Origin: Tubulanus polymorphus
Lineage: Eukaryota; Animalia; Nemertea
Direction of reading: 5' to 3'
Assembly: GCF_964204645.1 (NCBI RefSeq)
Contig: NC_134031.1
Location: 1,178,001 to 1,242,000, forward strand
DNA: 64,000 nt
Below, piece by piece: positions 21,301-24,300 of this stretch. A program made the position numbers and the translations under genes. Each line of letters opens with the position of its first letter. Position 1 is the stretch's first letter. Below the pieces are notes generated by a model. That model was not told where the DNA came from and did no database searches. It was given only the letters and a program-made list of their open reading frames with translations.

Positions 21301-24300
21301 TCATCTATTTGATGAGACGGATATTAGTTAGTCTATCTCTGAGGGTTTTAACTGAGCCTGTTGTTTAACGCTGTATCAATCATACTGTGAATTTCATGTT
21401 TCCGTTAAATGATTTAACTTTCAGTAATTGGTTACCAAGCCGATGAATTTATGCTGTTTTTTAACTGTTTTTAATTCTATCTCTGCTTCTTGTATCTGCT
21501 TCTTGTATCCTCTAAAGAAATCTTCCAAACCTTATGACCCTTTTCCGATCTGATGATCGGCCATCAAATATTACTCTTAAAACCACAGTTGAAGGGTTGA
21601 TATATGTCATGTCAACGACTGAGCCTCACAAGATATTTGTATTCAATCTGGTACAATCCATATTGCTGAAATCTGGGAGTAGAACTCTGACAGAACCATT
21701 ACATGGAGGTGTTGTACAGTAACAGAACCTAGGAGATGTTTTACCCTAACAGTACCAGGGAGGTGTGGTTCCCTGAGGAACCAGGGAGGTGTGGTACCCT
21801 GACAGAACCTAAGAGGTGTGGTTCCCTGACAGAACCTAAGAGGTGTGGTTCCCCGAGGAACCAGGGAGGTGTGGTTCCCTGAGGAACCAGGGAGGTGTGG
21901 TTCCCCGAGGAACCAGGGAAGTGAGGTACCCCGATGTGAAACGAGTAGTAGGAGGTATGGTTCCCTGACAGAACCATTACATGGAGGTATTGTACCGTAA
22001 CAGAACCTAGGAGATGTTTTACCCTAATAGTACCAGCAGGGAGGTGTGGTACCCTGACAGAACCTAAGAGATGTGGTTCCCCGAGGAAACAGGGAAGTGA
22101 GGTACCCCGATATGAAACGAGTATTAGGAGGTTTGGTTCCCTGACAGAACCTAAGAGGTGTGGTACCCTGACAGAACCTAAGAGATGTGGTTCCCCGAGG
22201 AACCAGGGAATTGAGGTACCCCGATATGAAACGAGTGTTAGGAGGTTTGGTTCCCAGACGGAACCTAAGAGGTGTGGTACCCTGACAGAACCTAAGAGAT
22301 GTGGTTCCCCGAGGAACCAGGGAAGTGAGGTACCCTGACAGAACCTAAGAGATGTGGTTCCCCGAGGAACCAGGGAATTGAGGTACCCCGATATGAAACG
22401 AGTATTAGGAGGTTTGGTTCCCTGACGGAACCTAAGAAGTGCTGCAACTATAGAAAAGTTGTGAGAGTTAAGCGGAGTAAACACAGACTGATACAGACTG
22501 GGTGTAAATCAGTTTACTTTCTTATAATGTAGGTTTGTAATTGGTTTGGAAACAAACGTATTCGCTACAAGAAGAACGTGTCCAAGGGGCACGAAGAGCC
22601 TCATCCGTCATTTCTGAATCAGGCCGCGGAATCCCCAGCAAGCTCACAAGGTTCTTTCCCATTTTTACACTTTCGCCTAACATTGTTTTGTGCCATGTTG
22701 TTTATTTTCTCACGTGTAGGTGTCTAATTGGTTCGGCAACAAACGAATCCGTTACAAGAAGACATTGTCGAAGTCGGGCGGTGGCGGTGGCGACGACGTC
22801 AACTTGTTCGCCGAGCAGACGGTCGTTGAAACATCGTCCGGACACAGCGTTCCACCCAGCGTTCCACACAGCGTTCCACCCACAGGTTAAATTATTTACA
22901 AGCACGACAATTGATCGTTTTGAATGATTTTGTCTCCCAATGTAGGTGTCTAATTGGTTCGGCAACAAACGCATTCGTTACAAGAAGAATATCGGCAAGG
23001 CCCAGGAGGAAGCGAATCTTTACGCGGCTAAAACAGCGGCAGCCGCGGCCGCTCAACAGGGCCCTCCAGACGGGGGGATATCAGGTTGGGAACGAGTCTT
23101 CATTTTCATACGAGTAGTTCTGTCTGTCCACCATTTCATCGGGGTCAAAATTTGGCGAACCCGGGTCCACCAAATTCACGATCGCACGCGCTGATGAGCA
23201 ATGGCGTCGGTATATCAGCCACGCCCCCTGGTGGTGTTGGCTGGAACCACGTGTTTGAAATAATGTCGGTATGTCCGCCACGCCCCTGATGGTGGTGGTG
23301 GTGGTGGTGGTGGCTAGAACAACGCGTTTGAAATAACAACGCGGTTATATACACCACGCCCCCTGGTGACAGTGGCTCGAACCACGCTTGCTCTCGGTGT
23401 CAGCGATTTCAAATTCAGGGCTACTGTCGAAATAGACAATAATAATCTGGTATCCCCACCAATAATCTGGTGATGTCCGCGATATTTTTTCTCGACATTT
23501 TTTTTCATCCGCGGATCGCGTCCTATAAATAGTGCCGCCTTCATTCAGGGCCATCAACGATTCAATCATATTTTCAGTTTTCTCGCACAACTGCAACAAG
23601 AACCAGTACAAAAATATATATCTATATATTAATATATATATATGAGAATTCCGTTCGTTTATGGATGAATGAATTTTTAATCCCTTGACATGATGTACAA
23701 GCAGAACTGAATAGAAGAAATCTTTTACCGTTCAACCGCCTTTTGATTCTCGTTTGAAAATTTGAGAAAAGAAAACCACAAACGACCGACCGCGAACACG
23801 TCGAAAACGTTTTCGAAACGCTTTACAGAATTCGTTCAAATCGCATCATCGTGTTGTCAGTTCCGCTTCTATTTATTTTTTTCCTCTTTCAATTCTGCAT
23901 TTTATGACGACTTTGTCGTCGCTTTTTATCAATTTTTCCTGTCGAAGTATTTTTTCATTTTCTTCAAAAATTTTCGCAATTTACGATAACGTTTGTACAA
24001 ACACGGGTCGAGACTCTCGAGTTGTTGAATGGTTTAAGGTTTTTTGTATCAGAAGCATGCTTTGTATATTATCGTCCGTAATCAGCTTCATGTGTTTGTG
24101 ATAAACGACGTTAAGAAATTAAGAAAAAAAAACTTTTGTGAAAATAAGAGAATAAAAAATATATATTTTTAAGAATGAAATGAAGTTTTTTGTGTGTTAT
24201 ATCGTAATATCGTGAAATTTGTATATGAACTGTAGAAATAATAAGTCTGATGTTATTTTGCTTAAACGATGCATGTGCTGATTAACTAAATAATACAGTA

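Follow-up and report, generated by a model that had tools for sequence, protein, structure and literature searches.

Three tandem Pbx exons used one at a time in the nemertean Tubulanus polymorphus differ in the fourth helix of the homeodomain

PBX/Exd is a broadly expressed cofactor that confers specificity on Hox proteins, and credit is usually given to the Hox partner. Vertebrates have whole-gene PBX paralogues and skip a downstream exon, with helices 3 and 4 constant. The resulting PBX1–4 proteins with their a/b isoforms resemble the Pbx of the nemertean Tubulanus polymorphus in providing several C-terminal variants. As a class, mutually exclusive tandem exons are common and well understood, with alpha-tropomyosin as the classic steric-hindrance case. 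Homologous exons are chosen one at a time in the Dscam1 clusters as in Tubulanus Pbx; the latter differs in having three variants only, in the frameshift produced by double inclusion, and in that a common docking site was not found in our pairing search. Recurrent internal paralogy has been described for tropomyosin and ion-channel genes (PMC3342872), in which, as in Pbx, tandem mutually exclusive exons were gained repeatedly in separate lineages. Those genes code for structural or channel proteins and have a link to alternative promoters, whereas Pbx codes for a Hox cofactor with no such link shown. The closest published case is exon 9 of Meis in Capitella teleta, which is tandem-duplicated and mutually exclusive (PMC3140891). 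Like Tubulanus Pbx, it is a mutually exclusive tandem exon in a TALE homeobox gene of a lophotrochozoan, but Capitella Meis has two copies that are five residues apart, and Tubulanus Pbx has three, with remodelling in the stretch that follows helix 3.

The window analysed here is a single 64,000-nt stretch of T. polymorphus DNA. Judged by the domains it encodes, the gene in this window is Pbx, a PBC-class TALE homeobox gene. A PBC domain lies upstream of a TALE homeodomain, the matching RefSeq proteins carry PF03792, PF05920, and PF00046, and homeodomain position 50 is a glycine (WFGN) in exons 6a, 6b, and 6c alike, which is a mark of the PBC class (homeobox class table, PMC4901127). Translations of the exons in the window occur unchanged in T. 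polymorphus RefSeq proteins XP_074653924-30, and a single T. polymorphus Pbx was present among the proteins retrieved in database searches. Exon 5 ends in phase 0 and supplies one donor common to the whole cassette of adjacent exons 6a, 6b, and 6c (Table 1). Each of these is entered in phase 0 and left in phase 1, and their first 14 codons are homologous. A prior sequence-only reading had proposed these three exons, and their coordinates, lengths of 118, 166, and 139 nt, TGTAG/GT acceptors, open frames, and phase-1 GT donors were confirmed when the sequence was read again. The protein lengths it gave (459, 475, and 466 aa with 6a, 6b, and 6c) were reproduced using the upstream exon-8 acceptor. 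Exon 6c is the ancestral-type copy, with a canonical PBX helix 3 and fourth helix.

Table 1. Pbx features in the Tubulanus window (positions of the window) and duplicated or internally spliced Pbx exons in other animals (positions of the compared loci)
Feature	Position	Strand	Evidence or remark
Tubulanus Pbx exon 3 (PBC-A/B)	14347..14591	+	RefSeq isoform match
Tubulanus Pbx exon 4 (PBC-B end), constitutive	20151..20341	+	RNA joint 20341->20854; RefSeq isoform match
Tubulanus Pbx exon 5: homeodomain arm, helices 1-2, TALE loop	20854..20989	+	Pfam Homeobox_KN/Homeodomain; RNA joints
Exon 6a, 118 nt	22533..22650	+	Joints to exons 5 and 7; RefSeq X6 (P0371); fold
Spacer 6a-6b, 69 nt	22651..22719	+	Sequence
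Exon 6b, 166 nt	22720..22885	+	Joint to exon 7; RefSeq X1 (P0291); motif similarity
Spacer 6b-6c, 60 nt	22886..22945	+	Sequence
Exon 6c, 139 nt	22946..23084	+	PDB PBX1 1b72 E=1e-14; joint to exon 7; RefSeq X2, X3, X5, X7
Exon 7, phase-1 acceptor common to 6a, 6b, 6c	24681..24784	+	Three RNA joints end there
Exon 8, two in-frame acceptors 24996 and 25026	24996..25091	+	RNA joint; RefSeq
Last coding exon, stop 29099-29101	28895..29101	+	Loose end of RNA contig maps there; RefSeq
Exon 6 pair, oyster	L001:2647-2942		112 nt, 57-nt spacer, 127 nt
Exon 5 duplicate, Mytilus edulis	L011:11799-11933 and 11971-12105		36-nt spacer
Exon 5 duplicate, Owenia	L006:39311-39445 and 39662-39796		214 nt spacer
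Exon 3 duplicate, Owenia	L006:28330-28851		58-nt spacer; upstream copy with GC donor
Exon 4 (PBC-B) tandem duplicate, Branchiostoma floridae	L010:45253-45441 and 45937-46122		
Internal-donor segments, Lineus and Patella	L005:17409-17460 and L009:17570-17620		

Two sequencing runs were used to follow the cassette. Run X1 behaves as DNA, and run X2 is unlabelled and was read as spliced RNA from its GT-AG joints. The RNA evidence is one sample of unlabelled tissue in the form of assembled contigs, from which rare forms are dropped and in which depth cannot rank the isoforms. Joints from exon 5 to 6a and from 6a to exon 7 were both found at a depth of 105.8 and were read as one contig, and exon 7 was also joined to 6b (depth 24) and to 6c (depth 51.1). 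A second joint from exon 5 (depth 52) was mapped to 6c, which could equally be 6b because the first 26 nt of the two exons are identical. Neither copy-to-copy joints nor a skip from exon 5 to exon 7 were listed among the contigs of this one sample. Each RefSeq isoform contains one copy only, with 6a in X6, 6b in X1 (as 5-6b-7), and 6c in X2, X3, X5, and X7; these models probably rest on overlapping reads and hence are not independent support. The cassette is real and expressed, the donors of all three copies are in use, and 6a is more than a trace product in the RNA sample. The junction check that had been proposed thus found all three donors joined to exon 7 in one spliced run, and the RNA joints and RefSeq isoforms together support the reading that a transcript takes one of the three exons at a time and that one gene makes three homeodomain C-termini. 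A 12-nt repeat within 6b (22845–22882) varies in length between individuals without loss of frame, and an allele shorter by 12 nt is present in the reads.

Residues W48, F49, G50, N51, R53, I54, and R55 are kept in all isoforms, and every base-contacting position is unchanged. With the recognition residues kept, the same sequence preference is therefore expected of all isoforms. Helix 3 of 6b is identical to that of 6c, and helix 3 of 6a is intact save for S46C, a replacement that also occurs in other PBX fragments. The fourth helix raises DNA affinity in PBX1 and plays a role in Hox cooperativity, and its segment is nearly invariant in the bilaterian PBX proteins that were retrieved. Its structure has been noted (PMC4391845), and it is reported to enhance DNA binding (bioRxiv 10.64898/2026.06.03.729869). 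The match of exon 6c to the structures of PBX1 and Exd extends through the fourth helix. The fourth-helix motif is recognisable in 6b, where it is displaced by a 4-residue glycine insertion (shuffle test p<0.0002); BLASTP searches with the 6b and 6c tails returned zero matches, and the shuffle test on the helix-4 segment was significant. Only the first eight residues of the 6a tail resemble the motif, two prolines follow, and the helix is largely lost. Single-sequence AlphaFold models of the RefSeq proteins, which are read as helical tendency only, have a helix to residue 84 in the 6c form and one that stops at residue 65 in the 6a form, with a brief turn of low confidence after it. From these features, 6c may partner Hox proteins at full strength, 6a may bind more weakly or cooperate less, and 6b may be intermediate, and we consider the chances that isoform strength differs in this way through the fourth helix to be evenly balanced.

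Over the first 14 codons, which code for helix 3, there are five synonymous and one non-synonymous differences between 6a and 6c, and two and none between 6b and 6c, in agreement with earlier counts; 6a and 6b differ by six and one. Compared with 6c or 6b, 6a differs at 5–6 of ~8 synonymous sites, and of 34 non-synonymous sites one is changed, with dN at 0.03 vs dS at 0.65 for 6a/6c (dS range, 0.65–0.77). The inference of purifying selection on helix 3 was upheld by Fisher tests (p 4e-4 for 6a/6c, 4e-5 for 6a/6b, and 0.03 for 6b/6c). The synonymous difference between PBX exons of different phyla has a mean of 6.3, to which 6a is comparable, and a distance at this level combined with few replacements indicates an old 6a exon with constraint on helix 3. 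The two synonymous differences between 6b and 6c, together with tails that are far apart, suggest a later duplication of this pair or a conversion of its common start, and the 31 identical nt that the two share around the acceptor could stem from gene conversion. The tails of 6a and 6c are strongly divergent (pN 0.42). Tails have an exon-like G+C content of 0.49–0.57 vs 0.32–0.36 in the spacers. A TGTAG acceptor is present in all three Tubulanus copies and in 0 of 10 compared exons, so a duplication within the lineage is favoured. Orthologues of 6a or 6b from other Tubulanus or palaeonemerteans were not found in length-limited full-length and short-fragment searches of databases from which such species may be absent.

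A tandem-duplicated, mutually exclusive cassette that was born in the Tubulanus lineage and kept by selection is the probable explanation. A single copy, be it 6a, 6b, or 6c, would be spliced between exons 5 and 7, always in the same frame. The cassette might instead be a tolerated redundancy in which splicing is exclusive, selection or gene conversion preserves helix 3, the tails drift, and the isoforms are interchangeable. The quick divergence of the tails and the in-frame length polymorphism of 6b fit such drift, but the fourth helix is so nearly invariant in bilaterian PBX proteins that an isoform which lacks it and is well represented would probably not be neutral. Both divergent tails have remained open in spite of saturation in 6a (probabilities of being open by chance, about 0.17 and 0.05), and the Lineus and Patella models attain a form without helix 4 by another route. 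We regard interchangeable isoforms as unlikely on this evidence.

An improbable alternative is that the cassette controls dose, with 6b acting as a sink in which the following spacer is retained, translation stops after 6b, and the product is degraded or is a truncated protein. Contig bin totals are fully accounted for around 6a and after 6c, and a remainder over the 6b-6c spacer (two bins) fits an unlisted contig with a depth of about 25, close to that of the joint from 6b to exon 7. On these totals, the spacer is probably retained in part of the RNA, and a retained spacer places an in-frame stop one codon past the 6b donor. The retained contig is derived from bin totals and is absent from the listing, however, and other intronic contigs occur in the RNA run, so it may be pre-mRNA. 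A sink would also leave 6a unexplained, the 6a-6b spacer being without coverage, as well as the helix-4 motif kept in 6b.

Exclusive use of the copies is best explained by short spacers combined with frameshifts and early stops, with branch points placed by consensus. The spacers of 60–69 nt would leave a branch point ~30 nt from the donor, so that adjacent copies stay unjoined. A branch-point-like CTAAC motif in the first spacer (22677–22681) has its A 30 nt from the donor, and the candidate branch A of the second lies at 29 or 42 nt, both by consensus only. These candidate distances of 29–42 nt are within the criterion for steric hindrance (donor to branch <50 nt; PMC5740500), and the geometry points to steric hindrance plus frameshift. 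When two or three copies are joined, a stop falls within three codons of the second copy, 301–497 nt before the last junction; a skip of all copies gives an early stop too, and all of these stops are >120 nt before the last junction. From the computed frames, such products would be expected to undergo nonsense-mediated decay.

The sequence-only reading had called the mechanism Dscam-style, and a choice in which selectors next to the individual copies compete to pair with a single docking site in the RNA is very unlikely here. Three-exon clusters often use docking and selector structures, one spacer pairs with 23820–23860 better than 25 shuffles, and the absence of a joint between 6a and 6c, which are 295 nt apart, is unexplained by steric hindrance alone. 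That joint is frameshifted, though, and degradation of its product could account for the absence. No segment gives good pairing with all three selectors, and five of six pairing tests failed to beat shuffles. This single-species pairing search, which has low power, revealed no docking site common to the three copies either upstream or downstream, and a search of Rfam gave zero matches. An assembly artefact or dead pseudo-exons, the former brought to mind by the 26–27 bp minisatellite just 5' of the cassette, can be dismissed with near certainty: contigs of the DNA-like run X1 tile 22413–24386 over all three copies with zero differing letters, which rules out an artefact, and pseudo-exons are ruled out by RNA use of all three donors and by the synonymous-site differences between the copies.

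Relatives were compared by exon-by-exon tblastn of whole Pbx loci. The three-copy cluster was present in none of them; tandem copies of this exon, which the sequence-only reading had proposed to look for in related genomes, were found in oysters, which have two. The single helix-3 exon that this reading had stated for vertebrate PBX and fly exd also occurs in Lineus and seven others (Owenia, Liolophura, Patella, Mizuhopecten, Mytilus, Branchiostoma, and Ptychodera), but not in the oysters (Crassostrea/Magallana, Saccostrea, and Ostrea; loci L001–L004). Both oyster exons are 3n+1 in length, and oyster RefSeq isoforms use them singly. The oyster pair is like the Tubulanus cassette in involving the same exon with the same phases, a short spacer, and a divergent copy upstream of the canonical one, but it has two copies that both keep the fourth helix, whereas Tubulanus has three and the helix is changed in 6a and 6b. 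A tree of 13 exon-6 sequences had zero supported branches and rejected neither shared nor separate origins. Parsimony and the occurrence of the TGTAG acceptor only in the three Tubulanus copies favour separate origins, and the oyster and Tubulanus duplications probably arose separately.

Duplicates of other Pbx exons were also identified (Table 1). Exon 5, which codes for the homeodomain arm and helices 1-2, is duplicated in several snails (proteins P0172, P0204, and P0191/P0258) in addition to Mytilus and Owenia, and each isoform model has one copy of a duplicated exon 5. B. floridae isoforms share an identical alternative copy of exon 4 with those of B. lanceolatum. Mussel (L011:7588-7680) and scallop (L008:11927-12001) have an incomplete copy of the 3' portion of exon 3; it is probably in use, since its sequence is conserved between the two. 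The end of exon 4 is repeated three times in the next intron of Liolophura (L007:36843-37102), in what looks like a local tandem repeat. Predicted RefSeq models of Lineus (X6-X8) and Patella vulgata (X3) use an internal GT donor right after helix 3 that removes helix 4, and this donor is absent in Tubulanus 6c because the matching codon is GGC. We tentatively suggest that invertebrate Pbx has repeatedly built internal paralogues, with tandem duplication of exon 3, 4, 5, or 6 in six lineages or more, that the Tubulanus switch may set the fourth helix on, off, or half on and so tune Hox-PBX cooperativity by tissue or stage, and that Lineus and Patella may have converged on this through the internal donor.

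The sequence-only reading had named no earlier description for PBX. No description of duplicated Pbx exons was found in a literature search that had most subscription journals outside its reach, but the Tubulanus isoforms are already in RefSeq through NCBI automatic annotation. The case is of interest for its remodelled fourth helix and because exon duplication recurs among Pbx genes. As predicted from their sequences, natural isoforms that keep the contacts and alter the fourth helix would offer a ready in vivo test of the role of this helix. Pbx exons have been duplicated repeatedly, with cases in a nemertean, an annelid, molluscs, and amphioxus, and we found no description of this recurrence.

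Other variation was observed along the gene. The start of exon 2 (about 3470) has a 7-residue extension as further alternative splicing in Pbx. Of the two exon-8 acceptors, 25026 is used in the RNA run and 24996 in most RefSeq models, and both occur in RefSeq. RefSeq models include a 51-nt cassette exon (25566–25616) that is skipped in the RNA run. The minisatellite (21705–22441) has higher-order periods in addition to its 26–27 bp unit and ends ~90 nt 5' of 6a. Short high-copy repeats with depths in the thousands lie at 20557–20615 and 24364–24452, and the second of these has 30-nt inverted arms and resembles a small non-autonomous transposon. Neighbouring open reading frames code for a ZIP zinc-transporter domain (31782–32840, + strand) and for TPR repeats (37577–38566, - strand).
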